A DNA stretch of 64,000 bases, from NCBI GenBank assembly GCA_020891255.1, contig BQFW01000004.1:124001-188000 (forward strand), in the 5' to 3' direction. The stretch is from Entomortierella parvispora E1425 (lineage: Eukaryota; Fungi; Mortierellomycota). The position numbers were made by a program, and so were the translations under genes. Of this stretch, positions 19,989 to 42,551 are shown in pieces; the first letter of the stretch is position 1, and each line of letters opens with the position of its first letter. The notes under the pieces were generated by a model. It was not told where the DNA came from and did no database searches. It was given only the letters and a program-made list of their open reading frames with translations.

Positions 19989-22900
19989 ATGTCCGACTCT
20001 GAAGACATGCCCCTTGCCATTCGCAAGAAGAACGCCAACAATTCGAGTGGTAAGTAAACACTTGGCCAACCCCCCCCCCCCAGCCCACTTGTACTGACGG
20101 CAGCAGTACCCAGGACGGATGTTTGGCTCCCCCCTATCCAACTTCCAGCCCTTCACACTTCAAGGATAGGTCATGGCCACCCTTTTCCTCACTGCCGATC
20201 TGGTTGTACACACAGATACACACCTTTAAAATAACGCGAAAAGAGCTGTGAACAACCACAAAAAAGCGCGTTTCTGTAGTGTGCACTGTTCCGACTTCTG
20301 TTTTTCTTCTTTTTTTTTCTCTCTCTCTCTCTCTTTCTTTTTTCTTTCTGGTTCTTTGATGGCAACGCTCATCGGAGGATAGTTGGCAAGATCAGAAATG
20401 TGGACCTGTTTATTGTTTGTTCGGAGGGATAAGACTGCAACATGTGTGGTGTTTGCTGAGGAGAGAAAGAGGGAGGGAGTGAGTGAGGGAAATTGCTGTC
20501 GATGATTAAGGAATGGGGTGAATAACAGTAAAACACCACGTCTGACGACCAAGGGGAAAGACGACCACAGCTTCTTTGTTGACGACGACCAACCTTTTTT
20601 TGTGCAATTGTTTCGATCCACGCGGGCATTTGCAACTAAAGTGGTGCAGGGTCTGCAGTCCGTTGTGGAGAGAGTGACGGGGGACTGGAGTGGGGCAAAC
20701 GGGGTGAAGGCACAAAATCAGAGAACGTGGATATATCGTATGTGAGCGGCATGCTTGATCGATATGGTGGCAAAAATAGACCATCTCCACCCACTGGACA
20801 TGGGTGAATGGAGCGCCATTGGGGGGAGGGGAGATGGATTCAATGGCCACATGCAAAAGCATAATGACGATCTGTACTAACGACATCATCTTTTCTTCGT
20901 GTGTCGGCTAGACCACAGCGACAGCGACTCTGACGTCCCCCTCGGCAAGCGCAAAAGATCTGCAGCACGCCAAGTTATCAAGGACGATGATGAGGACGAT
21001 GAAAGCATCCAGAACAGTGGCAGCGACTCGGACAAGCCTCTCGTCAAGCGCACACGCCCTGCCGTCAGAAGGAAAACCTACCAGGAGGACGACGACAGTG
21101 ACGACGATGATGATGGCGACTACAACTCCAACCACAAAAACGGATCGGCATCTAAAAAGTCAAAAGACTCCAACTCCTCGGACTCGGATGTGGCTCTAGC
21201 AAAGAGGAAACCCACCACCAACGGGAATGGTGACGCAAAACGCACCAAGAGTGCCCCAAAATACAAAGAGGAATCCTCCGACTCTGATTCGGAAATGCCC
21301 TTGGTACGGAAACAAGTCGATCGTGCCGCTTCAGCCCGCTTTGACTTGACATGTCCCCATTTCTGATGTGGCCTCATCTAACGGAGTTTGTTTTTTTTTT
21401 CATTGCAACAGGCGAAGAAGGCTTCTGCCAAGAAGGAGGCTCCTGCCAAGAAGGCTGCCGCCAAAGTCAAGGTAGAATCTGGCTCATCTAAAACGAGCAA
21501 GTCAACTAGCAAGTCAACTAGCAATGGAAAGACCGCCACCTCGAAGAGTCGCGTCAAGAGTGAGCCTGAATCCGACACAAAGCCCAAGAAGCCCAAGAAG
21601 GAAGAAGAGGAGGAGGAGGACTTGAACGCTTGGTGGCTGAACCAGAACGAAAACGAGGACGACAGTGTAAAGTGGACGTCCCTCCATCACAACGGCGTCT
21701 TTTTCCCCCCTGAGTACATCCCTCATGGTGTCAAGATGAAGTATGAAGGTAAACCCAACCCTCCCTGAGTTTGCTGCAAATCAAAGTCTCTTCTGGTTAT
21801 CCCATTTGGCCTAGAATCTGACTGTGTGATTCTCTCTATTGTAGGCAAGGCCATTACGCTTGCTCCTGAGGTAGAGGAGGTCGCCTCCTTTTTCGGAGCC
21901 ATGTTGCACACTGAGCATGCTGAGAACCCAACCTTCCGGGAAAACTTCTTTAAGGACTTTTCAAAGCTTGCTAAGCGTCACAAGACTGTAAGGGCACCCC
22001 CTGTCAACATTTATAGTCGATTGCAATTGCGATCATGATCGGGTTTACATGGATGATACTCATTGGAGACCCCTCCTCATTTTGAATTATTAGGTCCCTG
22101 AGATCAAGTCCTTTTCCAAGTGCGACTTCACGCCCATGTATGAGTACTTCCAGGCTGAGAGAGAGATGAAGAAGAGCATGACTAAGGAGCAGAAGCAGTC
22201 TTTGAAGGAAGAAAAGTTGGCGCTGGAGGAGCAATACGGTATCTGTTATTTGGATGGACGCAAGGAGAAGGTCGGAAACTTCCGCATCGAACCTCCAGGT
22301 CTCTTCCGCGGTCGCGGAAAGCATCCCAAGACTGGTTGCCTCAAGGTATATTTTCTTGGATCGTATATGTGTAATCATTACGGCATTCATTGACGGACGA
22401 AAATACCAACTATTTTTTTTTTCCGTTTATAGCTTCGTGTCCAACCTGAGCAAGTGACTCTCAATTTGAGTAAGGATGCCCCTGTTCCCAAGGCGCCTGC
22501 TGGTCACAAGTGGGCCAAGATTGTTCACGACGACACAAAGACATGGTTGGCGACTTGGAAGGAAAACGTCAATGACTCGACCAAGTACGTCTTCTTGGCC
22601 GCTGGCAGTTCCTTGAAGGGTCAGTCCGATATGAAGAAGTTTGAGGTGGCTCGTCGTCTCAAGGGAGAGATTGAAGGAATCCGTCGTGGATACATGGCGG
22701 ATCTCAAGGACAAGAAGATGTTTATCCGTCAGCGTGCCACGGCAATGTACTTGATCGATCGATTGGCGCTCAGAGCCGGAAATGAGAAGGGCGAGGACGA
22801 GGCCGATACTGTGGGCTGCTGCTCCCTTCGATATGAGCATGTGACGCTGGAGAAGCCCGACATCATGCATCTCGACTTTTTGGGTAAGGATTCGATCCGA

Positions 22901-24040
22901 TTCCAGAAGGACATGAAGGTCGACGAGCAGGTCTTCAAGAACATTCGTCTCTTCAAGCGCGAGCCCGCTCAGGAAGGAGATGAACTCTTTGATCGCCTCA
23001 AGGTAACGCAAGTCGTTTTCCTTTTTTTTTTTTCTTTTCCGTTGTGAGGACTTGACTTGGTACTGACTTTTTTGGAATCTTCATGTTTTAGACCTCGGAG
23101 CTGAACAAGCATCTTCAGAATCTCATGCCCGGTCTTACTGCCAAGGTGTTCCGTACCTACAACGCTTCCTTCACTTTCCAGGATCAGTTGCAAAAGCTGA
23201 CCCCCGCCGACGGCACTGTAGCTGAAAAGCTCTTGGCTTACAACCGTGCCAACCGCGAAGTCGCCATTTTGTGTAACCATCAAAGGGCTGTCAGCAAGGG
23301 CCACGCTGGTCAAATGGAAAAGATTCAGGACAAGGTAAAGACGAACATCCCTCTTTTGGGAGGCATCTCCTACGTTATTTTAAGATTTTTGGAATGCTCC
23401 TTTTTTGCATACATACATGTATTCATTCTCTCTCTTTTTTTTTTTTTTTTTTTTTTTGTGGTAGATCCGCGCCCTCAAGTACCAAAAGTACAAGCTGAAG
23501 CGTACGATTTTGACGCTGGAGCCAAAGTTGAAGAAGAAGCGTCCTGAGTTTTTGGAGCCCGAGTCAGATCTGGAGGACAGCTGGATGGACGAGTATGAGG
23601 TTCAGCTGATGGCCAAGGAGAAGGAGAAGGTGACGCTGAAATGGGAGAAGGAGAACCAAAGGCGTAAGGAGAACAAGGAGAAGCCCCAGACAGAGAAGGA
23701 GTTGAAGGACATGTTGAAGGAGGTCGATGCCCGGGCCAAGGAATTGGCCAAGGAGCGGAAATCTGGAAATGTCCCTGGTGCCCGAGGCGCCACGGTCGAG
23801 AAGTGCGAGGCCCAACTCTTGAAGTTGGACGAGCGCATTGCGGCGACGCGCACGGCCATGACGGACAAGGATGAGAACAAGCAGACGGCCTTGGGAACGT
23901 CCAAGATCAACTACATTGACCCTCGTATCTCTACGGCCTGGTGTCAAAAGTACGATGTGCCTCTGGAAAAGATCTTTACAAAGATCTTGCGTGACAAGTT
24001 TAAGTGGGCCATGACCGTGGATCCTGACTGGGAGTTTTAA
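19989..24040 (+). CDS. TOP1: DNA topoisomerase I (type IB); exons 19989-20049, 20912-21303, 21412-21748, 21845-21987, 22094-22345, 22433-23002, 23092-23334, 23465-24040
   Basis: [48 protein letters not shown] and the catalytic GTSKINY motif. Lys/Ser/Asp-rich N-terminus. All GT-AG junctions are in phase. Confidence 0.97.
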
Positions 24041-24319: not shown

Positions 24320-27300
24320 CTACGGAGCAGGACCTCCACGCTGCTGGTATTGCTGCTGAGGTGGGTACTGCTGCTGCTGCTGATGTTGGAACTGGCCACT
24401 TTGTTGACGAGGGATTCCAAACTCGTCGAGGTCTGCAGAGGTATCATCAGAGTCATAAAACTCCTGAGTGGTTAGTGTTTTCTTGACCCAGATGATTGTC
24501 TCGCCATCGTGGACTTGTGGCAATGGGCCTGAGTAGCCAGCAGGGGTCTCGGTCACTGTGGTCGTGGCATTTGAAGAGACTTGGGCCTGGTTGACTGAGT
24601 AGGATGTCGACTGATGGGTGGTCGAGGCATCCATGCTTCCTGGAGTTTGGACCGAAGCATGAATTGGGGTCGTAGTTGTAGTTTGAACTGGGACGCTACC
24701 ACTGATCTGAGACCCAGGAGTGGTCGTGGTCGTGGTCCAAGTCCTATAGCCAGTCGTTGTTGTGCCAGTGGAGGGTTGCTGGGCGTGACCTTGCTGCTGA
24801 ACGGGCTGGTGGATCTGCTGCTGCGACTCTGCTTGTGGTGCGTAGTTCAAAGCGAGAGATGCTGCGACCGTTGGTGCAGATACATGTTGCTGGGGTTGAG
24901 CATGCGACTGCTGGTGAATCTGCTGCTGCTGCTGCTGCTGTTGAGATTGAGCGTGCGACTGCTGATTGATTTGTTGCTGTTGCTGCTGGGGTTGAACATG
25001 CGACTGGTGGTGGACCTGTTGCTGGGGCTGCTGGGGCTGAGCATTCGACTGCTGGGGGACCTGCTGCTGTTGCTGCTGGGGCTGAGCATCCGACAGCTGG
25101 TGGATCTGATGCTGCTGCTGCTGTTGCTGAGGTTGAGCACTCAACTGCTGGTGCTGATGATGGTGCTGACCTTGTGGGGAGGCTGGGTGAGCATCGTGAT
25201 ATTGCTGTGCATGCTCTCCGTATCCTTGAGAGGCAAGAGCAGAAGCCGAACCGATGCCAGAGAAAGCAGCGCCATGAGTCGATGGAACAGCTGACGATGG
25301 CTGGGGCTGGCCATAGCTGGAGACGCTCTGACTCGGCTGAGTAACATTATGAGTTGTTACAGGAGCTGTCGCGTGTACCTGAGTAGCGGTTGATGATACG
25401 TGTTGCTGCTGTTGTTGCTGCTGTTTCTCCATATGAAGCATATGACTGGTGCCGAGCGAGACCTCAGGCCCTAGAGGAAGAACTGAGATGGATTCCAACT
25501 TCCTATTCAAGATGGTGCCGCCAGCTGTGCTGTGCCCAACTGAGGTACCAGCGGGTGAGTCGTGGTGTTCTTGGGGGTGTTCAGGTACCAAGCCAGTCAT
25601 ATCTCGAAGATTGTGATCGCCGAGATGCACGCCAGCAACCGAACTCATAGCCATTGGAGCGTGCGACTGTGATGGAACATGACTGACTGGGGCATGGCTG
25701 GCAGGGGCATGACTCTGAGATGGGCCAGAAGTCTCTTCATGCTCTGTAGAGTGCAAGGAGAAGGTATCATTGTCGGTAGTTCATGTCAGTGACCAGAGAG
25801 GGGTAATCGTTTACAAATATCAAAAATGACATATCCACTTACGGCCGTAGTAAGCATCTCCACGATGATGACCAAGGTTCATGGGTACTGGCATTGCGCG
25901 TGCTGAGGAATTGGGCGCGTGGGTTGAGATGTGGGTGGACCCAGTTTCTAAGAGTTTTACAGCAATCACACAGGAATGGATACAGTTAATACGAGCACTC
26001 TACAAAAAAAAGATTGGATCTTCAACTTACGGCCGTAGTACGACTCCCCACGTGGACTGTAGGTGTCACCGTGAGGAACAGGAGCAGGAGCGTGCGTGTG
26101 TGACTGATTCTGTGGTTGCTGGTGCTGGTGCTGAGGCTGGTGATGTGGCTGGCGATGTGGCTGGTGCTGCTGGGCATGGTGCTGCGACTCTGGCAAAAGG
26201 TCGGCCATATGAGGGAGGTGAACATTACCGAGCATGGCTCTAACGCCTACAACACCAGAAGCAATCGCGGCAGCCGCACTCTCGGCTACAGTTTCAGCCA
26301 TCTCTGCCGCAGATTCGGCCATCGCCACGGCCGTTTCTGTGATGGTCGGGTGCAAATCATGATGTGGGTGCAATTCTGAAGCCTGAACCTCGCGTGCATC
26401 AACTACGTGCGAAGGATGGGCGGGATTCTGGTGAGGATGACCCTCATCCGAACGAGGGTAGGAGCCATCTTCCTCTGGATACAATCCTAGTTTGGCTTGT
26501 GGGTGCTTCAATCCAACGGCCTTGGAGTGGTTGTAAGAGTGTTCACGAGCTTGGTGAATTGGGGCAGCATGCTGAGAGTGAGGAACGTAGACTGCTGCAG
26601 AGGTATGGGGAGCGGCATGTTGATCGCCGCGATGCAATGACCGAGAACCTCCCTGTCCTGATAATGTTGAACCGACGGGCAGCTCAGTGACATTCATGAC
26701 GCTCTTTGGATGATCTGGGTTCTCATGGTGAGAAACTTCCCCTCGAGAATAATACTCGGACTCTTCGGGATAGAGTCCTGCATGACTCTTGGTCATCGAG
26801 GAAGAATGGACCGCGTGAGGCTGAGGTGCCACTGGACGGCTGCGTCTGCCACTTTGCTGAGGCACCACTGCGAGGGTGGGTGCGCTCAAGTGAGCTGCAT
26901 GCACTCGGCGCTGCGTCTGATGATGTTGCTGCTGCTCATGATGGTCATAGTGCTGCTGCTGTTCACGCTGGTCATACCGCTGTTGCTGGTGCTGCTGGTC
27001 ATAGCGCTGCTGCTGATGCTGCTGGTCATAGCGCTGTTGCTGGTGCTGCTGGTCATAGCGCTGTTGATGGTACTGCTGGTCATAGCGCTGTTGCTGATAC
27101 TGCTGGTCATGGCGCTGTCGCTGATTCTGCTGGTCATAGCGCTGTTGCTGGTACTGCTGGTCATAACGCTGTTGCTGGTGCTGCCGCCCATGTTGGCTGT
27201 GGTGCTGCTCAGAGTTGCTGGGATACTGCTGTGACTGGTCGTGTCGGAACAGACGAGAGGATAACTGATGATATCCCACACCAGCAGAGTCTTCATGAGC

Positions 27301-30300
27301 GTATCCAGAGCTTGAGCCTTGGTGAGGGAGAGACATTGGTGAAGAATCTGCGTAAGAGCTGATGTGGCGAGAACCACGCGAAGCATGAGAGTCATGAGCC
27401 CCCTGGTGACGCGAAGGATGATAAGGGATCTCAATGACATCCATGTAAGAGTGAGGGTAGCTTGGGTTCTCATGCTCAACAGGACCACCGCGGGGATAGG
27501 AGGGATCTTCCTCAGGGAACAACGTCAAGTCGGCACTAGGACGCTTCAAGGTCACTGCTTTCGAGCGTCCATGCTGCAAAGAGTGTCCAGCTGCAGAAGA
27601 GTGACCATGAGCCGAGGCATTGCGGCTATGAGCTTTGCTCTCGTCGTATATAGCATGGGCTACCAAGGATGGCACGTGCAAAGTAGCCCCGACGATAGAA
27701 TGGACACCGTTCAAGGCAGTTCCAGCCAAGGGTAGACCTTTGGATGAACTCTGCTGCGAATAGGATGCAGGTTCGACAAATAACTCATTCAGGTGAAAAT
27801 CGGGAGTAGAATCAGGTCGACTTCCAAAGGCAGATCGCACAGTGTCAGTCGTACTTAAGCGACGAGGAGCCTCACGAGAAATGGATTGTCCTTTCTCCCT
27901 CTTCGCCTCCTTCTTCATTTGCCTGTTGTTTGGTGTGTTGACATGACCAGAGTGAGAATGGACTCCATGTTGAGGGTTGTGATTCTCGACAGAGGCGTGG
28001 TGGTGATACAGATGGTCCTCGTTCTCGCGATGAACAATTGCAGCCGTCATGTAAGGGTTGACATGCTGGCGCAGAGGTGTGACACTAGAGTGCACTGGAC
28101 CGGTGTTTCCGAGAGAAGAACCGGATCCTTGCGACGAGTACGGATAAGACGCAGTATGCAAACCACCAGCATGCGAACCCTGCATATCTGGCATTGGTGG
28201 ATGGGTTGGCTCCTCATGGGGTCTTCCTAAGACTTGATGCGATCGCTCTTGATAAGAATCCTCGTGCAATGGAGCACGACCCAAAGGAGCCTGTTTGCGC
28301 CTCGAGTTGATATGAATGGAGGAAACTGGAGTGGAAGGGCCTGAGGCGTGACTAAGATGGCCTTCAGCTCTGGCGGCCTCTCTCATCTCGGATATGGAAA
28401 TTCCTGGAGGTTGATGAGTGCCGGCGCTTGAGGTTGGGGAATGGTACGCTTTGTGGATGGTCTCGTAGTGCATAGTCGTGTGCTCAACTCGGTCATGCTG
28501 AGCCTGAGCACGAGAGACAGCGGCATGGTAAACAGGGATATGTCGAGTAGAGCTTTCAGCGGCAACGGCACCAAAGGGGACGCCGCCATTCTCGTCCTCG
28601 AGATACTCGATCCGCCCTGTGTACCTGCTGTCTCGAGGAGGCTGATCGATACCAATTGTATTCTCCTGAGCCCTCTCCACATAGTCATCTGAGAGATAAC
28701 TCAAGTGAGAAATCTTCGATCCACCACTGCGGGATTGAGGGTAACCCGAATGGGAGTGACCATGGGTTTTGTGGATGAACTTTGAGGCGTCAAACACGTA
28801 TCCCTATTACACAATCGTTATTTGGTTAGAAGATTACTCAAGTGGGGGGTTTTTTTTCAGTTTTCGCCTCGGAACTTACATTGAAGTCGTCCTTTTGAGG
28901 ATGAGAAGACCTCGAGAAACTAGTCTTGCTTCCATGATGGACGTGACTCTCGTCATGGTCACTGCAGTAGTCATCGTCGCATCGGTGGCGATGGTGATCA
29001 TGATGATCTGCAGCATCCTGCTCATAACGGTAATGCTGTAGCTTGGTCTCATAACGAGCAGGAACATCATGGGCATGCCCAGAGATGGCCATTCTGTGGC
29101 TGCCATTTGTGCCGTGGTCGTCCTGTCCATGAGTTCCAATATGTCCAGTGAACGTGCATTGATGGCTATTACTCTCCCCTCCACCTGCCTGTTCGCCGAC
29201 ATAGAGAGCCCCAAGATTAAGTTCGGGTGAACCTGAAGAATCTTGGCGGTGAGATGCACGGATCACATTATGTCGTGGATGCGTTGGCGCGTGTCGTTGA
29301 TGACTTTGATGTGGCTGAGAGCGACTCTGATTCGATGCACGGTTTGATGAACGGTTCTAGACACAAAGAATGATTTCGTTAGACGTTTTCGCGGTTTGCC
29401 AGCTCTATCCACATGCAACATGTACTCACCAGACTCTGCCCTTGACGGTGACCAGTATGCTTGACGGCCTCTGCATATGTAAAGGAGCCAAAATGGCTGG
29501 ATCCTGGGGCTTTATCGAAAAATGCCCCAATGTTCAACTGAGGCGAATCGGACTCGTACTGCGATGCATCTCCACGAGCCCAACCTTGACTGGAAGAATG
29601 AGCGGGCTGCCCATAATGAACGTGACTCTCATCATGATCGCTGCAATACTCATCGTCGCATTGGTGGCGATGATGGTTGTGGTGGTCAGTTGGGTCATGT
29701 TCATAATGACGGTGCGAGATCTTGTAGCGATCACGATGATCTGGAACGGCAATGGCATGATGACCGTGAGAGTCTCCCCGGTGTATATTCAGTACGTGTT
29801 GGTCGACTTCAACATTTCGTTGTTGCTGAGGCATATGGTAGTACAAGTTGTTGCTGTCGTAGTTTGCACCATGAGGATAGGGGTGTCCTTTGGCATCGTA
29901 GCCCAGTTGCTTTTCATGTACAGGGTGATGATGCGCATGAGGATCTTCATTCTCGCGTATGTCAATGTCATAGTCAAAGTGCTTTTCTGCCGGTCGAAGA
30001 CTATGAGCGGGCTTGTGACCATGGTGACCAACGCTTCTGTCCTTGTGCTCGTGTGCGTCCTCATGTTGGGCTGGCTCATGTCCACTATGGGCACGGTTGC
30101 CTGTGCGCTCCGTCTCAGTGGAGAGCGATCCAAGGTTCATTTCGGGAGAGTGATCATGGTGGTCCGCTGGGTCCTGACTGTGATGGTCATGGGTGATTTT
30201 GTAAGAGTCTCGGTTGTCTGGCACATCAATGGCATGATGACCATGGGAATTTCCTCGCATCTTGTTATGCAGCTGCTCTTCCCTATGGAGCGAGTCCTCG

Positions 30301-33300
30301 TCGTACTCATACGACTCCGACTCTTGTTGGTGCGATTTCGATCTGCTTGGAGTCTCTTTGAACAGTGGTCCAAGATTCAACTCTGTAGAATCGGTCGAGG
30401 CACGGGAGTGCTGAGAACGAACATGATGAAGGATAATAAACGCGTAAATATCAATAGGACCTATCAATTTTAGATGCTAGAAGACAATTGATGCAACATA
30501 CCTTCGCAGGAGTGCCATGATGGTCGTTCTTCACAGCAGCGGAATAGGTGAAGGCCTTAGATACCGAATGTGGTGCTGTGGCCTTGTGTGGAATCCATCT
30601 CGATTGCCTGTTCTCTTGGAAGACAGAACCCAGACTCACATCTGGAGACCTCTGTGATGCATGAGAGTGACGCGATTGCAAGTCGAATCTCTGAGCCTGG
30701 GTGCTGTATGTCATTCGACCACGCCCGCCTTGGATGCCTTGAGGGTAATGGATATGGCTGTCATCATGGTCACTGCAATCTTCATCGTCACACTGGTGAC
30801 GGTGGTGATCATGATGATCGGTAGGATCATGATCGTAATGATGATGGGCAATCTTGTAATGGTCTCTATTATCAGGAACAGCAATAGCATGATGGCCACG
30901 ATCGGGATGTGCAGCTTGTTGATGGGTCTTGTTGGGCTCGACAGAATGTGAAACAAGAGCCTTTGGCGCTGGGCTAACTTTCGAAGAATACTCGTGGCTG
31001 ACATGACGGGCCGCGTGTGAAGCGTGATGATGAGCATGAACATCTTCGCTTTCGCGCAAGTTTGTGTCATAATCCCAATGCTTGTCGACAGGAGCCGGTG
31101 CATAGGCAGGCTTGTGGCCACGGTGACCCACACTTCTGTTCAAATGCTGATTGTGCTCGTCCTCCTCGTCATGATGCATCAGCCGCTGCGAGTGAGCTGA
31201 TCTTGCTGGGGCTTGAGAATGGTGGGTGCCAGTAGGATGGACCAGATGGGCTGGCGCACTGAGTGGATCAACGTGGTGCTGCTGAGAAGAGGCCTTCTGG
31301 CTCTTCTTTCCTGGGCCACCTGAAGAATCCATATCGGTGAACAAGGTACCCTGGCTCAACTCCTCTCGGCGTGCGTGATGAGCATGGACGGCAGCGTGCG
31401 ACTTGTGAATAGCAGTGTGTTGCTGTTGATGGTGCTGCCGCTGCTGCCGCTGCTGCTGCTTGGCCTTGGTGGCGTGAACACTGACATGGTGGTGGTGCGA
31501 AGACTCGTAGTCAGGATGCTCGGAGCGCGCCATATCGTCAAACTGGTGAGTCGGTTTATGGCCGCGGTGACCGAGACTTCGATCCAAGTGCTCGCGGTGC
31601 TCGCCATCTTGATGGTGGTACATACCTCGTCCTCCCTTCGAATTTGTAGATGAAGGCGGATTGAGGAGAAGAGATCCCAAGTTCATAAAAGGCGCGTTGA
31701 AATGATCTTCATGTGGTGAGAACTCATTATCCGAGTCGAAAACATCATCAAACAGGGCGGACTCTCGGCGCCTTTGACTTCCACCGCTGCTCGCCTTCTG
31801 ATCGTACTGGTGGCCCTGAAGAGTGGGAGGAGTAGCAGATCCATGCTTCTGCTGCTCAGAGTGCGCCATATCGCCAAACTGGTAAGTCGGTTTATGGCCG
31901 CGGTGACCGACACCTCGATCCAAGTGCTCGCGATGCCTGTCATCTTCATGGTGGTACATACCTCGTCCTCCCTTCGAATATATAGATGAAGGCGAATTGA
32001 GGAGAAGAGATCCCAAATTCATAAAAGGCGCGTTGAAATGATTTTCATGTGGTGAGAACTCATGATCCGAGTCGAAAACATCATCAAACAGGGCGGACTC
32101 TCGGCGCCTTTGACTTCCACCGCTGCTCGCCTTCTGATCGTACTGGTGGCCCTGAAGAGTGGCATGAGTAGCAGACCCATGCTTCTGCTGTGTAGCTGGA
32201 TGAATCGAGTGGGCTGGGGCATTGAAGGCGCCATTGTGATGGCTGCTAGCGCGTGCACTGAATTGTTTCTTGCTGGCATTCAGCTCTGGGGATTCCTCAC
32301 GAGTGTGACGAGCGTGAGTCGATCGAAGAATGGCACGCCGATGATGCTCTGGGGCTGCAGCTAGATGACGATGGGGCGACACATATCCTTCGGGATGGAA
32401 GTGCTGGTGACTACCGTCATGGTCGGTACAATATTCATCATCACATTGGTGTCTGTGATGATTATGATGGTCCCAAGGCTCGCCATGCTCGTAATGTTTG
32501 ATTTTGACCGGTCGGTGTGCAGGAACAGCAATTGCATGATGTCCATGTGAATTTCCTCGTCTCTTGTTGACCAAATGTTGCTCCAAATGTCGCTGTTCTA
32601 CCTCCATATCCAGGTGCTGGTCAACATGGTAGTGGCCTTGATTTTTCCTTCCCTTCTGCTCCTTGAGCATGACTTCCAGATGAAGAGCCGGGAAGTTTTT
32701 AGCAGGATGAGAATGCTTGGGGTGAAAAGCGGCTTCGTGACCTTGAGAATTCCTGTGGGTGGGGACGTGGACTCGATCATGTTCTCTGCTTTGGATGAGA
32801 TGTGCTGCCTTCGCAGCGGTTGTTTGAGAACCTGAACCGTGCGACTTTGCTCCACTACCAGATGCTGAGGCGTGTTGACTCACAGAATGAATCAAGTGGG
32901 CAGGAGCACTGAATGGCTCGGCCTCATGGGAGGCATGGCTTAGGGAAGACTTGGCCGACTTCTGCTTGGATGCCTTTTGGGTCCCATTTTGAGTCTCTGC
33001 AAAGAGAGACCCGGCTTCAAGTTCTGGAGATGCGGTCCTGACATTGCCTTGCGAGTGCTTGATAGCCGTAGGTCGATCGGAAGATTCTGCCATTGAGCTG
33101 GTCTTGCCGCCTTTGCCTTGAACTTGCCAGCTGTCGTAGGCGCCCGTGGATTTGTGCGTTTGAGCCGAGTAGATCAGGACAGGATGGTGGAATTCATGTT
33201 GATGGTGAATAGGCTCCTTTTGTCCGGCATTTGCGCTACTTTGCCTGGGCTTTGAAGCCTGGCTGCCAGTAGGCTCCTTGGATAACTGGTCCAAGTGCAT

Positions 33301-35036
33301 CTCTGGGGTTGCCATGCCAGACGTGTGATGAGGATGGCTGGCATGGACAGCTGCATGGGACTTGTGGATCGCAGACTGAGATTGATGTATACCATGAGAA
33401 TAGCTGCTGGTCTTATCAGAGAGATGCTCGTGGCTATCGTCATGGTCACTGCAGTAGTCATTGTCGCACTGGTGACGATGATGATCGTGGTGGTCGGTTG
33501 GATCGTGTTCATAGTGATGATGATGGATCTTGTAATGGTCTCGGTTATGAGGCACGGCATGGGCATGGCCCTCCAAGGCGCGATGACTGTGGCTCTGCTG
33601 TCCTTGATGGGAGATACGGGTGCGCTTCTTTTTTCCGCTCACAATTGACCAACCTTGATCGTCATCCGTCAAAAGATGTGAGCCGCCATGGTCCTTGTGT
33701 GATGAAGAGCCAGCAGGATGGGTGAGATGAGCAGGGGTGTTGAAAGGATCGGCGAGATGCTGGGAAGCGGCCTTCTGACTCTTCTTTCCTGAGCCACCTG
33801 AAGGATTCATATCGATGCCCAAGGTACCCGGGTTCAACTCTGGCGACTCTTCTCGGCGAGCGTGATGAGCATGGATGGCAGCGTGCGACTTGTGAACATC
33901 ACTGTATTGCTGCTGCTGGTTGTTTTGCTGTTGATACTGCTGTTGTTGATACTGCTGTTGTTGATACTGTTGCTGCTGCTGGTGCTGAGGTTTGGCCTTG
34001 GCGGAATGAACACTGACATGGTGGCTGTGCGAAGAGTCGTAGTCAGAATGCTCAGAGTGCGCCATATCGTCAACCTGGTGAGCCGGTTGATGTACGCGGC
34101 GGCCAACACTTTGGTCCAAGTGCTCGTGGTGCTCGTCATCCTCATCATAATGCACCGGCCGCTGAGAACGAGGTGATCTTGGGGCCTGAGTTTGATGCCA
34201 TCCAGCCTGATGAATCAAATGAACAGGGGCGTTGAAAGTGTCGACAACGTGGCGATGTTTCGATGCTGAGGTAGTCTTCATAGCAGATGCGCGTCCTGAA
34301 CTGGCGGAGGGAGTGTCGGGGAACAGAGTGCCCAAGTTGAGTTCGGACGAGTAATCGCGCTCATAGTTCTGAGATGATCTCACTGCTGAATGTCTAGCGT
34401 GCACTGGAGTTTGGTGCTGCTGCTGCTGCTGACGATGATGATGAGAATGCTGACCGGCATTATAGAGATGTTCATGGCTATCGTCATGATCACTGCAGTC
34501 TTCGTCATCGCATTGGTGGCGATGATGGTCATGGTGATCCGTCGGGTCGTGCTCGTAGTGTTGGTGTGCAATCTTGTACGAGTCTCTGTTGTCAGGGACA
34601 GCGCGTGCATGGTGTCCGTGGGAGTCTACTGAGTTCGATGAGGCTCCGCGCGATGCCTGTGACAACGGCAACTTGGCAGTCGAGTGCGATTCCTTGAGAT
34701 GGGCGTTTGCACCATGAGTCTGAAGAGCTGGGGCGTTGAAAGGTTGAGCAGAGCGAATGGTGTCCTTCTGTCCCGCATTTCCCCCACGCTGCTCCATGTT
34801 TGAAGACCGGCCGCTGTTAGGCTCAATAAACAACTGGTCCAAATGCCTCTCGGGGGTGGCAACTCCTGAGGTGTGGTGGACATGGCCAGCCGCGTGAATA
34901 TGAGATCCACCACGTTTCTGGCGAACTGTCGGCTTTGCAAAGAAGGATGGGTTGATGTCAAAGGTGGATGAACTGCGAGTATAGGCAATGGGCACCAGTA
35001 GTTTAGTCTCTGTTTGCCTTTTCTTCTCCCCATTGG

Positions 35037-35067
<31 letters not shown>

Positions 35068-36040
35068 CTGTCCGAATGAGAATGCGATGGTCCAGAATAA
35101 TGAAAAGACTCGGAGTGGTACGAAGACTCGGAGTGCCTGCTGGTAGAGAGATTCTGATGCAAATTCTTTTGGCCATGAACTCCATAGCTTGCAGACGAGG
35201 AACTATATGAAGCGATCATTAGTCCCATAGTCCCATGCAACAAACTGTTTCTGTTTCTTTCAAAGGATAAAGCACTTACGAGGCTCTATGGGCGCCACTG
35301 GCTGACGACGATGCTCCGGATTGCATTTTCGAATGAACACTATCATTCAAAACAATGGTGATTAAATACAGTATAATACCAAGACATGCCAAGAGACTGC
35401 ATAAATAGATATACGCTTCACTTACGACTTTGTATGCGAGGTCAAGGGCTGGAAATCTTCGTCACGGTAAACAAACTCCTTGGGCTGAGCGTGGGACTCG
35501 GCATGGGTGTCTGAACTGCCACCAAATTCAAGGACAGTCGTGGAGGAGTTGCGGCGACCACCCATCGAGCTAAAGATAGTCAACGAGGGTCGGTTGATCC
35601 CAACATGCACACGATGATCTAGGTGCTGATGCAGATGGTTGATTGGCCCTTCGTTTTTCCTGCCAGCGACGATCTCTTGGACGACAACTTTGTCTACAAA
35701 TCGATTATTTTTTTGTTCAAAAAGATGAAGGTTAAGAACATGAGCGAGAACGCTCTATGTTGAAGTCAACTGGCCAAGGTTCCATACCAAGAGGGAGATC
35801 AAACTCGGTTCCATCGACCGAAACGGCTTTCACTGGCGCTTTGGAGCTCTTCGGCTTACCGCCACCAAACTCTTCGGAGGCGACTCGGAACTCGTAGCGT
35901 TCGTCAGGTCGCACAGCGACAACGCGCATGGCGGTTGCCCCGGCAACGACAAACCCCTGGGTTGAGTCCATGGCAGAATCGTCATCGCCTCTCGACCGCC
36001 CACGGGAAGACTTTTTGGCGTCGTTGGTGTTGCTATTCAT
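24320..36040 (-). CDS. Giant His/Gln/Ser-rich modular repeat protein of unknown function, ~3,648 aa; exons 36040-35788, 35693-35426, 35339-35280, 35202-35068, 34972-30502, 30410-29430, 29356-28880, 28803-26031, 25947-25843, 25743-24320
   Basis: Nine GT-AG introns, mostly with recognisable branch-like motifs, join the separate ORFs without a frame break (10,947 nt = 3,649 codons including stop). The same repeat modules recur across exons. Confidence 0.8.
26943..27185 (-). repeat. 27-bp coding minisatellite, about 9 units, encoding Q(H/Y)QQQRYDQ
   Basis: GGTCAT recurs on the + strand every 27 nt from 26943 to 27159. Confidence 0.9.
31523..32194 (-). repeat. Direct tandem duplication of a 336-bp (112-aa) unit inside the giant gene
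   Basis: Matching strings at offset 336 (for example ATCGTACTGG at 31801 and 32137). The protein repeats SGGSQRRRESALFDDVFDSD...FNAPFMNLGSLLLN twice. Confidence 0.9.
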
Positions 36041-36511
36041 AGCTTGGCTTTCTTGTCGATTGAGTGGGACTATTTACAAGGAATATTTACAAAGGATGCG
36101 CACAGAGATGCAACCAGCTGGATTGGCATATGATGCGGGCAGAAGGGAGATAACTAGAGCAAGAGTACGTGAAAAAGAGTAGGGATAGGTTTTTGAAGCA
36201 GAGGAAGGGACAGCAACGCAACGTGGAAGAGAACAGACGGTGGTGATGTGAAGAGCAGAAAGAGAGGAGCGCGCGTGGTGAGCATGAGGAGAAAAAAAAA
36301 AAAAAAAATCTAGGGCTGTGAGTTCCAATTGGCTGTAGAACGTGTCAGGGCGAAGATTGGGTGGGACGGGTGACTGCTATTGACGGGTGGTGACTGCGTA
36401 TTTTTTTTGTTTCTTTTTTCTTTTTTTTGGATGAAGACAGACACCCTTGCAACAGCAGGCAGGCAAAAGGCGCCAGGACAGAGAGAGACCGCAAAAGAAA
36501 AGAGACAAAGG

Positions 36512-36917: not shown

Positions 36918-37771
36918 ATGTTGAGCTCAGACTCGGGATCGTCTGACCTCTCCGATGCCGCGTCCTTGTCCTCGGACAACTCCTTAGGCTCTGGTTCTGA
37001 GGATGACCACCGCACTGTGAAGGTCAAGATGAGGACTCAGGCGTCTTCTTCTATTCCTCCAAAGACCTCTACCTCTGCGCCATTAGGGGCTAAGCAACAG
37101 GCCACTCGGACTGCCCGGGGCCACTCCTTTTCCTCCTCAGACTCGGGCGATTCGAGCGATCCTAGCTCCTCTGACCTCGACGACGATGAGAACGGTGGAC
37201 ATGGAAAGAGACCTCCAAATCACCTTCGCGCCAGTAAAAAATACCCCTCTACAAAAAGCAAGGACAAAAAAGACAAGCGGGCACAGGTTCAGCCTCCAGG
37301 AAACGCCCCTATATCGCTCTCAGCCTCTCAGCCAGTTTACTCGCAAGATATCATAACAGCCACCACGTCAGCCATTGCCTCCCGAGGCATTTCCACTCCT
37401 AGCCGCGGCCGTGGTCGTGGCCGTGGAAGGGCGCCTTTGGCTGGCCATGGATCGCGCAAGTACGACGCATCTGGTGCAACCGTGATCGACTTTGAGGACT
37501 CCTCTCAACAGGACATCCCCCCTTTAAACTCGACTGTATCTACACAACAGACAACGACAGCTCCCGCCACTCCAGCACGCAGCAAGAAGGAACAGTCGAT
37601 TGAAAGAACCAAGACAGCCAAGCCTTCAAAAGCAGGCACCAGTAAACCTAAAGCAGGAGCTCGCAAAGCTGGTCGACCCAAAACTGTCTCCAAAGACGTG
37701 TACTGCATATGCCGAGGGCCTTACGATGGTGTTGAGTTTATGATTGCTTGCGACCGATGCGAAGGTACAAA

Positions 37772-37807
<36 letters not shown>

Positions 37808-40800
37808 TGAGAACATCTTTGCTGGCCTTACTTACCCTCTCGTTGTTGACCTTGGAATAGAATGGTTTCATGGACGCTGCATTGGGATGAAACCTCAGGA
37901 CGCAAAGAAGAGCAACCATTACTTTTGCGATACCTGTCAACGTATTCGCCAGATGCTTGGCGTCAGCACAGCGCCCCAGGAAGTTGCTAAACCTCTGAAA
38001 GCCAAATCTCGCAGCAAAAAATCTGAGGAGAAACGGATCGAGAGACAGGAGATGGTTGTGGTGGATTTGAGCGATGACGACCCGATTATGGCATCGCCCC
38101 TTCTACGCCAGGACATACAAGGATCCACGGTCGACGTTATAAACCCTGGATTCGAACAGGGCCATCATGTAGTAGCAACAGAACCCACACCTGGCGTCAC
38201 CCTGTCTACACACAAGCAAACCAAACCCAATGATAAAGCCTCTAAGCGTAAAGGCATTCCTCAGGAGCCAAACCCATACCCCCCGACGCCAGTCTATGGG
38301 ATTGCTCCTGCGATTCCAAGCGTTATCACTGTCACTGCTGCCGCCACCGCCGCTCATAGAATCAATACTGGTGAGTTTGACGGCATGGTTAATGAGGTCA
38401 AAATGAATAGTATCTACAAGCTTGCATGCTAACATTCAAAAATCATCTAGCCACCCCATCTTTAGACGATGAGGACGAAGAAGATGTATGCCCAGTTTGT
38501 GAAGACGAGTGTACCTGCAACACAGGCGGAAATTCAGTTCAGCAGATTGCCTCCACAACGCCGTTGGTTGACAACTCGCCCGGGTTTAGCGCGATCAAAG
38601 TACCTTTTCAGCCTAATCGTGGATCTAAAGAACCGACCTCCATTTACACCCAAGAGAACTACCGGATAATGAGCGAGGACGAAGGCGTTCCCGAAGGGGC
38701 TCAACCATTGGCAAACGACACTTTCCACACGTCCTACAAGAACCCAATGTCCATTCCACGAAGACCATCGATCCTTCGTCGTGGTGGAAAAGGAATTGGA
38801 AAGGCTCCGCATCTGATGCAAGCCGTCAAAGGACAAAGCCGAGGCAAGAGTCTTAAGGGTGGAAAGGCCTCCATGCACTTCTATCAGCAATCGCTCTCCA
38901 CGTCGAGTTCGGAAATGTCGGACGCGCTCAGCGACGAGGACGAGGACGAGGACGACAGGGACAGAGAGCTTCAAAATGAGCCGCTGCCTGAGGCACCTCG
39001 CGTGAAATACGATCGAGAGAAAGAAAACATTCCCGCAGATGGCCACGTGACCCTGAGCTCATCCAGCTCTCAGAGCGATTCTGAGGAGGAGAGGACAGCC
39101 GCACCCCGGCAGAGAACAAAAAACGAACTGGGCTCCCTCGACATCATCAGGATTCGCACGCCTATTGGATCACCCTCGACTTCCACGGCGCCCCTCAGTG
39201 TTGAAGTAAAAGTTGAAACCAAGAAGCGTGGGCCCGGTCGACCCAAGAAGCTCAAGGACGCGCTCGTTGTCAGTAGAGAGGACGAGCAGGCTCTCTATAC
39301 GCCAGCCGTGATTGCCTCCAGGAAAAGCGCCTCTAGCCACAAGCATGGACCCAATAGATCTGAGGCCGCGTCCACCATCATTATCGAATCAGATTTTCCT
39401 TTCATCGCTTATGATCCTGAAGTTGCTGAAGACGTCAAGGCACTGAATAGAACAACCAGTGACGAATCGGACGCAGACGTCTCCACGCCATCGGACGCCA
39501 CCGGCGCACGACCAGTACTAGCAGTGAGCCACGAGGATATCTTTGGCGATGGAGATTTTAGTGATGAACTCAGTGGCGACCTGAGTGACATTCTTAGTGA
39601 AGATTTGGATGATCTCTCGGATGATGGCCTTGACTTTACCAGCAGCGATGAAGAGGACGAGACAAGCAGCAGTAGCAGCCCTCGGGAGTTTCACTATTCA
39701 GAGATGGAAGAGCAGGACGAGTCCCTGGTGGACTCGGACTCTTCTGAAAACTCTGTGAGTTCGGAAAGCTCTGGATCTTCTGATCTTGATTCAGACTCGG
39801 AACTGGAACCCTACCCTCAGGAATTTTCAGATGAGGATCAGGAACTGTATGAATTCGAGGTCGAGGGCGAAGAAGATCTGATCGACGATGAGGAGCTCAT
39901 TCGATTGGCTGAACAGGAGAGGCATTTTCTCTCGAAAGCACAGGGCCTGCACGAGGATTTCAGTGACGAAGAATCTGACCCAGGTCGCAATCCATTTGAG
40001 AGCTCCGAATCAGAACACGAAAAGGATGAGCACGAGTTTGATGGCGACGAGGATGAATACTCTGACGAGTTTTACGACAACGAGTATTCTGATGATGAAT
40101 TTGGGGACCTTACTGAGGCCGAAATCCTTGAGCAATTCCGAGGATCCCAGGCGGACCTAGCGCTCATGATGATCCCTCCAGAGCAACAGGAGCAACTCTT
40201 ACTTCTTCAACACTATGAAGAAACCCATCGACTTCACCAGCAACTCCAGCAACAGCCTTTGATTCATCAGCAGGAGTCCAGTCTTGATCACCAAGGATTT
40301 CACCCTCATAATGGCAGTCATATCGACGGCGTCCTTGCCGCCCCCGATATGATGCAGTCCTTTGATATGAATGTGCCTGATCTGGATGCAGTTTCTCAGC
40401 AATTGGCCGCATCGCTCGCTAATAGTATTGCTAGCAGTATGGCTGGCAGCATGGCTCAGTCCCAGAACGGATCATTTCTGACCTCAGCTACAGACGGTCA
40501 GGGTATTGAGGGCGACGCTTCACAGTCATCTTTGGGAGCTTCTGGGAGCAACAGCAACACTATTGGGCTTGTGGACAGTGTTTCACCAATCTCAGCATCT
40601 TCGACATCACCTTCATCCTCAGCTCAGGCTTGGACCACCCCCGCGTCGCTTACACCTACAGATTCGTCTGTGACAGGTTCAGCAACAATCCCCACCCCAG
40701 CGAATACTCCAACACCCCCAGGCACCGTTGCGGGAACTTCGCCTTCTATACCGACCTTGATAGAAAACGTGGCTCCAGGCAGTGCTTTGACAGCTGAAGA

Positions 40801-42551
40801 TCAATCGTTACCTGTGAACCCGCCTCAGCTGGCTACTACTGGCTCAGGATCATACAAAGAGGCTGCTCAAAGAGCATTTGCCGGACTTCCTGTCCAAATC
40901 AATACACAGCTGACTGAGCCCTCTTCAGTGAACAACTCGAATGACGGTGCTACGCGAGCAGACGAGGTGATTCCCAGTGGCGATACAACCGACGAAGCAT
41001 CGCCTACCATGCATGGCGGTGAGTTCCGGAAGAGACAGAATGAACAACTTCTGAGCCGCGATGTAAGTTTCTTCAGGTGTTTACGTGACAGCAAGTTATG
41101 AAACGGAAAGTATTATCCTGCTAACCCAGCCACTCCTGGAAATGCGATAGGTTGTTATGAGCCATGGAAAAAGACGCAGGCTGTCTTTAGCTGTTCAGTC
41201 AAGACAGGATTCAAAGATCTTACCAGCAGCTACCTCTGGACCTTCCTCTATGACTGCCTCCGAAACTGACACCGCGAATGTGCGCGATGCTTTGGCAGAG
41301 ATGAACGCCTCCATGAGTGGGTACGACTTTTCAAAGCCCACGATGCCTTTTGTCGACCCTGCCGCGCGGATCATCATGTCCCCACCTACTGTTCGCTCCA
41401 GGAAGTTCAGCTTAAAGGGAAAGGAGGCCATGCACGCGTCCGACTACATGCCCATGGACGACCTTTTAGACACATCTGCTCTATATGGCAGATCATCTTC
41501 TCGGTCTCCTTCACCTGAAAGATCTGAAATCAGCAAGGCTGATGAAACAGAAATGTCCCAATCTGCACTTAAGGACCTCCACCGTTGGGAAAGAGTCCCT
41601 ATCGGCACTTTCCGGAAGAGTCGAAGACCCAGTTCTCCTTACGTGGGCCTTCAGGGCGCTCTCAAATTTGGAAATGTCACCATGCCTGCGACGCTTCTCG
41701 CCAACCACCAACAACATCAACACCAGCTCGCGCAGGAATCGCATCGTCTCCAGAGAAAGTCTGGAGGGTTACGAAAATACCGACCTTCATCATCGACATC
41801 CGACATCATGTCCAGTGGGATCGGGCGCTATACACTCCCAGTGGATAGTTCAGGAGATCGTTATAGCCTTGCACATTTCAAGCAGCAACATCTCAGAACA
41901 CGATCGACCAATGTATCTGCCATGGCACAAACACCTCCGAGTGCTCTTGCGGGCATGACTATGGAGGGCTTGGCGGGATTCGGATCTCCTGATGGTCTGA
42001 TGAAGGCGCCTCTTTCTTATAATCGCGCTTTCATTATCGGTGACAAACCTTCTGCGAGTCGTGGTTCTGGGCTGACCTCTGGTCGCCGACGACACAGAAG
42101 CAAGAATTCTTCTGCACGCTCAGGACACCGTCTTTCTCAGACCGATACAACCAACACCGGCTTGGGAATTGGACTTGACCGCGACGGAGGTGGGGATGTG
42201 GGTAAAGGGCAGCGGGATGTTATGACCGACTCCTCACAATTACCGTCCTCGGCCTGTCCGACGCCATTGCACTCGCCCCTGTTCAGTGCTACACGTACAG
42301 AAGATAGAGTTCACCACCAGACTTCAGGAGAAGCCATTGACCCCGAATCTTCTGCCACTAAACTGGTGCTGAGAAAATCAAGCATGCCTCGCCCTGAAGA
42401 GTCCCTGGTGCCTCATTTCGAGCTGGACATTGCCAAGGAAATGGAAGGTTTTCATGACCGTCTGTTGGCGAAGAAGGCGGCGATGGAAGACGAATCAGCC
42501 CACTCCAGTCAGCTCGCGGATGGTGACCAAGTCGCTGAAAGCGAACTCTAG
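36918..42551 (+). CDS. PHD-finger / AT-hook / acidic nuclear protein, ~1,789 aa; exons 36918-37764, 37861-38370, 38451-41062, 41151-42551
   Basis: Spliced PHD finger YCIC...MIACDRCEEWFHGRC...YFCDTC (C4HC3). AT-hook-like RGRGRGR, AGRPK and RGPGRPKK, long Asp/Glu/Ser tracts and a CPVCEDECTC motif. Phases check. Confidence 0.85.

Follow-up and report, generated by a model that had tools for sequence, protein, structure and literature searches.

Gene structure and coding sequence

The subject of this work was a single histidine-rich gene, EMPS_02652, on the minus strand of a 64,000-nucleotide (nt) stretch of the Entomortierella parvispora E1425 genome (contig BQFW01000004.1, positions 124,001 to 188,000), which is referred to below as the window and whose first letter is position 1. 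The gene model was rebuilt from the raw sequence and occupied window positions 24320-36040, with the ATG at 36040, the stop codon at 24320-24322, 10 exons and 9 introns. The junctions were read from the sequence and then fixed by a script. The joined coding sequence was 10,947 nt long, had one terminal stop and 0 in-frame stops, and encoded a protein of 3,648 amino acids (aa) and 406 kDa. From the first to the ninth, the introns were 94, 86, 77, 95, 91, 73, 76, 83 and 99 nt long; every one of them kept the phase, with donors of the form GT(A/G)(A/T)G- or GTATTT and AG acceptors. A previous sequence-only reading of this stretch had proposed ten exons, nine phase-consistent GT-AG introns, a coding sequence of 10.9 kb and a product of about 3,650 aa, and the rebuilt model agreed with all of these figures. 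Moreover, the seven longest stop-free stretches of the gene (at least 100 codons each) were all on the minus strand, within 24320-36073. Judging from the frequency of stop codons, a stop-free exon of 1,490 codons in DNA with 52% GC was far beyond chance.

The same reading had described the gene as hidden, which turned out to be wrong. Our model was identical at every residue, over 3,648 aa, to the GenBank entry GJJ70303.1 (UniProt A0A9P3H5U5), "hypothetical protein EMPS_02652" from Entomortierella parvispora, which surfaced when the closest orthologue served as the seed of a word-index search. EMPS_02652 is thus already public, without a name, a domain or a study. The literature searched by accession number and for histidine (His)-rich proteins of Mortierella and Mucoromycota contained no paper about this protein or its family.

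A second isolate with the same species label was represented by contigs that were ~5-6% diverged from the window. In its exons, insertions and deletions summed to multiples of three (-6; -8 with -1; -2 with -1; -6; +6), and the one intron covered, intron 5, had changes of +2 and -2. The 40 substitutions listed for exon 6 comprised 13 synonymous and 27 non-synonymous changes, fell on the three codon positions in the proportion 12/9/19 and created no new stop. The frame was kept in the second isolate, and most of the sequence was only weakly constrained.

It was extremely improbable that the locus was not one functional gene but a row of neighbouring genes, a pseudogene in decay or an artefact of annotation. 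Such an explanation could appeal to the search for sequencing runs, which listed DNA runs alone, to junctions 8 and 9, which had no orthologue support, and to the many orthologue annotations that were fragmentary. However, it would have to account for the absence of in-frame stops from 10,947 nt, for the reading frame kept by a diverged isolate, for a C-terminal motif conserved at the very end of single-gene Podila models and for conserved flanks that left no room for other genes. Additionally, the public E. parvispora genes were AUGUSTUS calls supplied with a cDNA file from RNA-seq reads mapped with HISAT, in a paper that names DRA013164 as the RNA-seq data of the species (PMC8759367). Our nine-junction splicing model is based on the logic of the sequence, on the identity with this AUGUSTUS model and on the comparison with orthologues. 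The earlier claim that there was one gene here was upheld by the stop-free spliced model, the public identity, the kept flanks and the single-gene Podila orthologues, and window 24320-36040 is accordingly described as one intact gene with 10 predicted exons.

Along the minus strand, exon 1 (35788-36040) encoded aa 1-85 and held the conserved N-terminal motif MRVVAVRPDERYEFRVASEEFGGG at 35858-35929, while exon 2 (35426-35693) encoded aa 85-174 with the conserved PINHLHQHL..PSLTIFSSMGGRR (35551-35646) and PKEFVYRDEDFQPL (35443-35484). Next came exon 3 (35280-35339, 60 nt) and exon 4 (35068-35202, 135 nt), the latter followed by intron 4 (34973-35067), within which a 28-nt homopolymer at 35037-35064 read as A on the plus strand and as T in the transcript. 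The short-read contigs from both DNA runs stopped at this homopolymer. The main His-rich modular region was encoded by exon 5 (30502-34972; 4,471 nt, aa 240-1729), which contained four C-x4-C modules together with the ELNLG, FNAPAH and EHLDRSVGH motifs. A tandem duplication at 31517-32190 (2 x 336 nt, 94% alike) doubled a 112-aa unit within this exon, and the contigs from both DNA runs were fragmented across it. At a CAG/CAA (poly-Gln) array at 33862-34055, contig depth reached ~1,400-2,000x in both runs, and many contigs from elsewhere in the genome carried the same simple repeat.

Exon 6 (29430-30410) encoded aa 1730-2056 and exon 7 (28880-29356) aa 2057-2215. A 367-codon open reading frame (ORF) with an ATG ran antisense to exon 6 at 29370-30473 on the plus strand; it was most likely not a gene but a mirror ORF that arose from the biased composition of the coding strand. 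Exon 8 (26031-28803, aa 2216-3140) had a set of motifs different from that of the module region, exon 9 (25843-25947) was 105 nt long, and exon 10 (24320-25743, aa 3176-3648) was Gln-rich with runs of Thr. Exons 8 and 9 both finished in ..YYG ahead of the donor site, Gln made up 20% of the residues across exons 9-10, and a 45-nt unit was repeated 5.3 times at 24888-25131 in exon 10.

Orthologues and conservation of the locus

An exhaustive phmmer search with a single sequence, aa 240-1439, against 1.84 billion representative proteins produced 18 matches at E < 0.001. All the named ones came from Mortierellaceae (Gryganskiella, Podila, Linnemannia, Mortierella, Haplosporangium and Entomortierella) and were annotated as "hypothetical"; three further matches belonged to metagenome or Logan assemblies. 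Word-index searches yielded more relatives from the same genera, including M. alpina. A second protein search with the C-terminal half added one Podila protein, and this single gain was probably due to Gln-rich words dominating the search. No Pfam family was found in four orthologues. According to these searches, the EMPS_02652 family appeared to be confined to Mortierellaceae.

EMPS_02652 belonged to this unnamed family both by full-length similarity and by motif order. Namely, the order that we compared was the N-terminal MRVxAxR..EFRVA, the modules, the YPEE/ENPxHP blocks and the C-terminal ETxxWxK..DLDEF, and in two full-length single-gene Podila proteins (P0005 and P0020) the N-terminal motifs were likewise followed by the modules, the middle YPEE blocks and the C-terminal motif. 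Homologues included KAG0047749.1 from Gryganskiella cystojenkinii, KAG0028443.1 from Podila clonocystis and KAG0347701.1 from Podila humilis, with 50-60% identity for Gryganskiella. Like EMPS_02652, these homologues had the N-terminal and C-terminal motifs, the YPEE/ENPxHP blocks, 2-8 copies of the module and the same flanking genes, whereas the number and subtype of the modules differed among them; none has been characterised. EMPS_02652 was the longest member found (3,648 aa versus at most 2,514 aa), many of the others being partial models from draft assemblies.

The genomic position between TOP1 and a PHD-finger gene was conserved as well, tblastx comparison with two orthologous loci having recovered one of these neighbours in each. 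The PHD-finger gene was divergent and upstream (37284-42512, plus strand), as in the Gryganskiella cystojenkinii locus (L001). TOP1, encoding topoisomerase I, was convergent and downstream (21625-24040, plus strand), as in the Podila clonocystis locus (L002), and its product was 80-95% identical to the P. clonocystis TOP1 in the same position. The ORFs of the PHD-finger orthologue at 36918-37775, 38426-41101 and 41157-42551 individually had no Pfam match. Upstream of EMPS_02652, the alignment with Gryganskiella covered only the first exon of the neighbouring gene and a short TTTGTAAATATT stretch, without an interpretable common element.

Several junctions could be followed into other genera. 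The position of intron 1 was conserved in both orthologous loci, the exon 5/6 junction (after aa 1728/1729) fell at the same residue in Gryganskiella, and a Gryganskiella fragment (P0016) aligned through the exon 7/8 junction. The Podila orthologue (L002 461-974 versus window 35426-36040) lacked the 28 aa VKAVSVDGTEFDLPLDKVVVQEIVAGRK that spanned the exon 1/2 junction and had an intron at the equivalent place.

Repeat module and interleaved motifs

The module region (aa 240-2215, His 15.1%) was a loose super-repeat of four elements: first, SPELNLGxLF; second, a Lys-rich linker followed by (D/E)PFNAPAHLxHP; third, HxEHLDRSVGHRGHKPxH; and fourth, a module of ~50 aa. The repeat motifs were located by regular expressions, and the module by a hidden Markov model (HMM) built from 31 copies from several genera. 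The consensus of the module was RGNSHGHHAIAVPxxRxxKIxHxxxxxxPTDHHxHHRHQCDxxxCSDHDxSHxH, or in its short form RGNSHGHHAIAVP...DHHxHHRHQCDxxxCSDHDxSHxH. Further motifs, H-K-S-H-A-A-V-H and N-E-D-x-H-A-H-H-H, were interleaved with these elements, so that six motif types were found, in addition to a second set in the C-terminal half; at least five had been reported from the letters of the window. A self-BLAST of the whole protein for repeats returned the identity match only. For ELNLGxLF and FNAPAHL we considered a resemblance to PAM2, the LD-motif, the clathrin-box and DPF, and set it aside by reasoning, as the register or the key residues did not fit.

By the HMM, EMPS_02652 had six full copies of the module and one truncated copy, and most relatives had 1-8. 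Copies 1 to 4 were in exon 5, at 34441-34626 (aa 355-416), 33403-33588 (aa 701-762), 32383-32559 (aa 1044-1102) and 30739-30909 (aa 1594-1650). Exon 6 contained the truncated copy without a Cys pair (30150-30257) and copy 6 (29592-29780), and exon 7 contained copy 7 (28916-29098). In a tree of the modules, copy 3 paired with a Gryganskiella copy (P0001:1110-1174) with support of 97/89, and others were recent duplicates within species. This suggested that some copies are orthologous between genera and have been kept individually.

Across the 31 copies, the invariant columns were H9, D33, H35, H37, C42, D43 and H50, and the near-invariant ones were A10, A12, P14, K21, H34, R39, H40, Q41, C47, D49, S53, H54 and H56. 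The cysteines were distributed just as selectively: 12 of the 13 in EMPS_02652 formed the six C-x4-C pairs of the modules, and likewise 12 of 13 in Gryganskiella were within such pairs. A Linnemannia/Mortierella subtype of the module read RHQPHDExCGEHHD, in which Q-C-D-D-E-x-C had become Q-P-H-D-E-x-C and a Cys was swapped for an adjacent His. Since the His/Cys/Asp cluster was conserved in a fixed frame, Cys was confined to it and a Cys could be replaced by His, these residues were more plausibly metal ligands than the result of disulfide formation or compositional bias.

The same features were relevant to a different explanation, in which EMPS_02652 would be a hub of short motifs without a specific metal role. 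His would then be a by-product of repeat expansion, and ELNLGxLF, FNAPAHL, YPEE..YPR and the acidic C-terminal motif would bind partners. The many short motifs kept across genera between fast-evolving linkers would agree with such a hub, as would the recent tandem duplications. However, the best-conserved columns of the best-conserved element were mostly His, Cys and Asp, Cys was almost confined to the C-x4-C pair, and most of the long relatives, whatever their genus, contained 10-16% His. Thus, we consider a hub of this kind quite unlikely.

Terminal regions

The N-terminal part (aa 1-239) contained three short conserved motifs, MRVxAxRP..EFRVAxxEYGGG, PxNHLHQHL..PSLTVFSSMGGRR and PKEFVYR(D/E)EDFQPL. 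Other motifs characterised the C-terminal half: a conserved basic helix, LNELFVEP, GLGGIRxLVGAALHVPAMVAHALY, an Ala-rich helix, Gln-rich arrays and three copies of a HSKAVxLK..LYPEEDxSYPR..ENPAHP block. Most of these were encoded by exon 8, namely the basic cluster (27889-27927), the hydrophobic helix motif GVHSIVGATLHVPSLVAHAIY (27646-27714), the HSKAVTLK..LFPEEDPSYPR..ENPxHP blocks (27415-27630), a QQQRYDQQH array of 9 x 27 nt (26942-27184), the Ala-rich helix motif (26212-26352) and LNELFVEP. The protein finished with the motif ETIxWxK..TTxDFY..DD..DLDEF, which corresponded to DGETIIWVKKTLTTQEFYDSDD..DLDEF at 24419-24508 in exon 10.

Some of these features would be expected of a nuclear Gln/His-rich disordered scaffold or co-regulator, whose tracts and basic clusters would target nuclear bodies or chromatin and whose modules would be zinc-stabilised mini-domains binding protein or nucleic acid. 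Namely, the conserved basic cluster NRQMKKEAKREKG was predicted to be helical, a KKKRTR stretch was also present, and the poly-Gln arrays were long. His repeats in human proteins have been linked to nuclear speckles. Moreover, aa 1-240 resembled only clusters of the Tudor/Agenet type in the ESM Atlas. On the other hand, their feature score was weak (0.56, for a Tudor/Agenet lead at aa 25-95) and far below the threshold of 0.9 for a lead, and profile searches with the N-terminus against Pfam and the Protein Data Bank (PDB) had no match. In the Podila orthologue, neither the protein nor the DNA contained the 28 aa needed to close a Tudor-like barrel, leaving half of the Tudor/Agenet segment missing there, and no DNA-binding or chromatin domain was found. 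Thus, a nuclear scaffold was in our view an unlikely explanation.

Composition, charge and predicted disorder

EMPS_02652 consisted of 12.7% His (465 residues), 12.1% Ser, 9.7% Gln, 8.3% Ala and 0.36% Cys, whereas His made up 1.1-3.7% of nine other long ORFs of the window. A hand count on part of the protein had given about 13% His with much Ser and Gln, close to these whole-protein values. High His contents of 10-16% were typical of most long relatives, regardless of genus. The computed isoelectric point (pI) was 6.71, and the net charge changed from -48 at pH 7.2 to +36 at pH 6.5 and +160 at pH 6.0. With a shift from -48 to +160 between pH 7.2 and 6.0, the behaviour of the chain would have to change strongly over the physiological range of pH.

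No convincing transmembrane helix was present (the best 19-residue hydropathy window scored 1.46), and inspection revealed no signal peptide, the N-terminus being polar and charged (MNSNTNDAKKSSRGRSRGDDD) without a hydrophobic core. These sequence features supported an intracellular protein. Noise was all that came out of Pfam searches with all exons, four orthologues and six sub-regions at E up to 10 (fn3 0.076, Peptidase_C24 0.015-0.17, Ustilago_mating 0.12), and PDB sequence and profile searches had no match for the module or the N-terminus. In a PDB search with the whole protein, FAM155A appeared at E 0.7 and was dismissed as noise. The hydropathy maximum, the polar N-terminus and the Pfam noise thus bore out the initial impression that the protein had no signal peptide, transmembrane helix or recognisable domain.

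AlphaFold was applied to two conserved regions. The module, with 31 aligned copies, was returned without secondary structure at a predicted local distance difference test (pLDDT) score of 59, and aa 2340-2720, with 4 sequences, gave three short helices at a pLDDT of 46. Order-promoting residues made up 17.5% of the protein, and the ESM Atlas look-alikes of the C-terminal part were disordered only. Thus, the chain was probably largely disordered with embedded conserved motifs, and the disorder suspected at the outset was supported by the two pLDDT values and the low share of order-promoting residues.

A coenocytic fungus needs rapid sealing of its hyphae, and a very large, disordered, Gln-rich protein whose charge can be switched near neutral pH might serve as an aggregator plugging wounds or septa. 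It would then be functionally analogous to SPA proteins, Leashin or gellin and would gel or aggregate once a ruptured hypha exposes its cytoplasm to external pH or metal. A giant protein that gels has been described from Mucoromycetes (PMC10873517). However, Pfam, PDB and the exhaustive protein searches indicated no homology of EMPS_02652 to any characterised protein, among them SPA, Leashin and gellin, so that the comparison with SPA and Leashin made in the sequence-only reading had no sequence relationship behind it. Moreover, gellin works by shear-induced unfolding (PMC10873517), and no folded domain was detected or predicted in EMPS_02652. Apart from composition, nothing here spoke for the idea of a condensate or wound plug, and we regard this role as decidedly improbable.

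Comparison with known proteins

In overall design, EMPS_02652 resembled profilaggrin, another giant His-rich disordered repeat protein. Profilaggrin and related proteins of the S100-fused type from vertebrate skin are intracellular, disordered and built from repeats, with ~4,000 aa and ~10% His. However, EMPS_02652 lacked the S100/EF-hand head (no Pfam family in aa 1-240 at E = 10), showed no homology to these proteins and had another repeat design. To our knowledge, filaggrin has no conserved Cys pair.

A second group of possible counterparts comprises the histidine-rich Ca-binding protein (HRC), histidine-rich glycoprotein (HRG) and bacterial Hpn/HypB, in which tandem units of His and acidic residues provide high-capacity binding of divalent cations. 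Local HRGH and DHHDHH strings of EMPS_02652 were similar to theirs. On the other hand, EMPS_02652 was far larger, had neither a signal peptide nor homology to them, and its module had fixed residues that are not ligands (A-x-A-V-P, K-I, R-H-Q). For HRC in particular, the signal peptide for the endoplasmic or sarcoplasmic reticulum and the acidic/His repeats were both lacking, the repeats of EMPS_02652 being unrelated.

The fungal proteins compared were gellin, which is reported to consist of tandem beta-trefoil domains, and SPA and Leashin, which are found in Pezizomycotina, fungi with Woronin bodies, and which localise to septal pores or tether these bodies. They shared with EMPS_02652 a very large size and its presumed cytoplasmic location; SPA proteins and Leashin are also largely disordered, and aggregation has been proposed as the way of acting. 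Gellin differed in being folded and unfolded by shear (PMC10873517), in contrast to the pLDDT of 46-59 in two regions of EMPS_02652 and its lack of a Pfam domain.

With respect to the possible metal sites, C2H2 zinc fingers and metallothioneins were the closest comparison, since Cys and His were the probable Zn ligands of the module and the sites were repeated along the chain, as in fungal metallothioneins. However, the module read C-x4-C-x2-H-x3-H, unlike the C-x2-4-C-x12-H-x3-5-H of C2H2 fingers, and there was no Pfam zf-C2H2 match. Metallothioneins are small and typically contain >15% Cys, compared with 13 Cys in 3,648 aa here (0.36%), and gave no Pfam match either.

In summary, EMPS_02652 was closest by behaviour to filaggrin-like giants, to cation binders of the HRC/HRG type and to the disordered pore proteins of fungi, and it failed each of their defining features that we tested. 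As far as its sequence can tell, it is a true member only of the uncharacterised Mortierellaceae family, and its module is without a counterpart in Pfam or PDB.

Possible metal- and pH-responsive function

The anatomy of EMPS_02652 was solid, and its function is something that we only infer from it. The explanation that we prefer, with a probability of roughly 40%, is that EMPS_02652 may work inside the cell as a multivalent scaffold or buffer that responds to pH and binds metal, the metal probably being Zn2+. In the putative mechanism, the invariant His, Cys and Asp of each module would be the ligands that chelate a divalent transition metal, with Zn2+ as the most likely one. The C-x4-C-x2-H-x3-H segment might form a tetrahedral site and the DHHxHxxH cluster, with the His residues of the head, one or two others, so that a module could hold two or three metal ions. 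Folding or cross-linking of the module would require bound metal. Mild acidification would turn the net charge from negative to strongly positive, and the protein could thus act as a high-capacity buffer or scaffold sensing both metal and pH. Recruitment of partners or self-association might depend on the tail rich in Gln and on the remaining short motifs.

A number of observations weighed against this explanation. In Pfam and PDB, the module had no counterpart among the known metal-binding families, its ligand spacing was unlike that of any classical zinc finger, and AlphaFold left it unfolded (pLDDT 59). A yeast-type zinc-responsive element (ACCYTNAAGGT) was not found upstream of EMPS_02652. 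Several relatives, P0021 from Mortierella alpina and P0025-P0028, had no module match by the HMM, suggesting that the module may not be essential to the function of the family. Constraint was weak outside the motifs, as the 27 non-synonymous and 13 synonymous changes in exon 6 indicated, and His-rich tracts are also known to serve roles unrelated to metal. Among the ESM Atlas results for the module, weak rows of the bacterial Ni/Co-regulator type appeared at 0.52 and were not used as evidence.

The initial proposal of a metal- or pH-responsive role thus fared unevenly. The metal and pH part fitted the invariant His, Cys and Asp, the Cys pairs, the pI of 6.71 and the reversal of charge, while composition was all that the condensate part could draw on. 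A more specific version of the metal-binding scaffold can be put forward tentatively, as a possibility that we would not call likely. In this version, the module would be a folding unit of a new kind that depends on metal, with ~9 His, 2 Cys and 3 Asp as ligand positions in a fixed frame of other residues, occurring six to eight times along a disordered chain of 400 kDa. The protein would then be a giant lineage-specific buffer for zinc or another transition metal, and cross-linking triggered by metal or pH could organise the coenocytic cytoplasm.

Other genes in the window

Besides the genes flanking EMPS_02652, the window contained a kinesin with a KIF21A-like domain over two long ORFs (2388-7749, minus strand; Kinesin motor E 1e-53) and two ABC transporter genes (ABC_membrane and ABC_tran) within 35 kb (15884-19525 and 49690-52374, both on the plus strand). 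It also encoded an F-box/LRR protein at 61198-63288 on the plus strand and, at 54061-57003 on the minus strand, a protein whose domain was of the fungal PH-like type (PF25381).

Biological significance

Mortierellaceae belong to the most common fungi of soil, and industry uses them as a source of lipids. EMPS_02652, with its 406 kDa, is one of the largest proteins of this family of fungi and has no name, domain or paper. The practical outcome of the analysis is a gene model that was confirmed and is already public, a protein family that was delimited and a map of the parts that can be tested. If the module binds no metal, EMPS_02652 would be a clean case of a lineage-restricted giant disordered protein in which motifs were kept and the rest evolved fast. 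If the module does bind metal, it would represent a new family of metal sites and a potential genetically encoded metal-binding tag, and the coenocytic hyphae of these fungi would possess a so far unknown means of zinc buffering or pH sensing.

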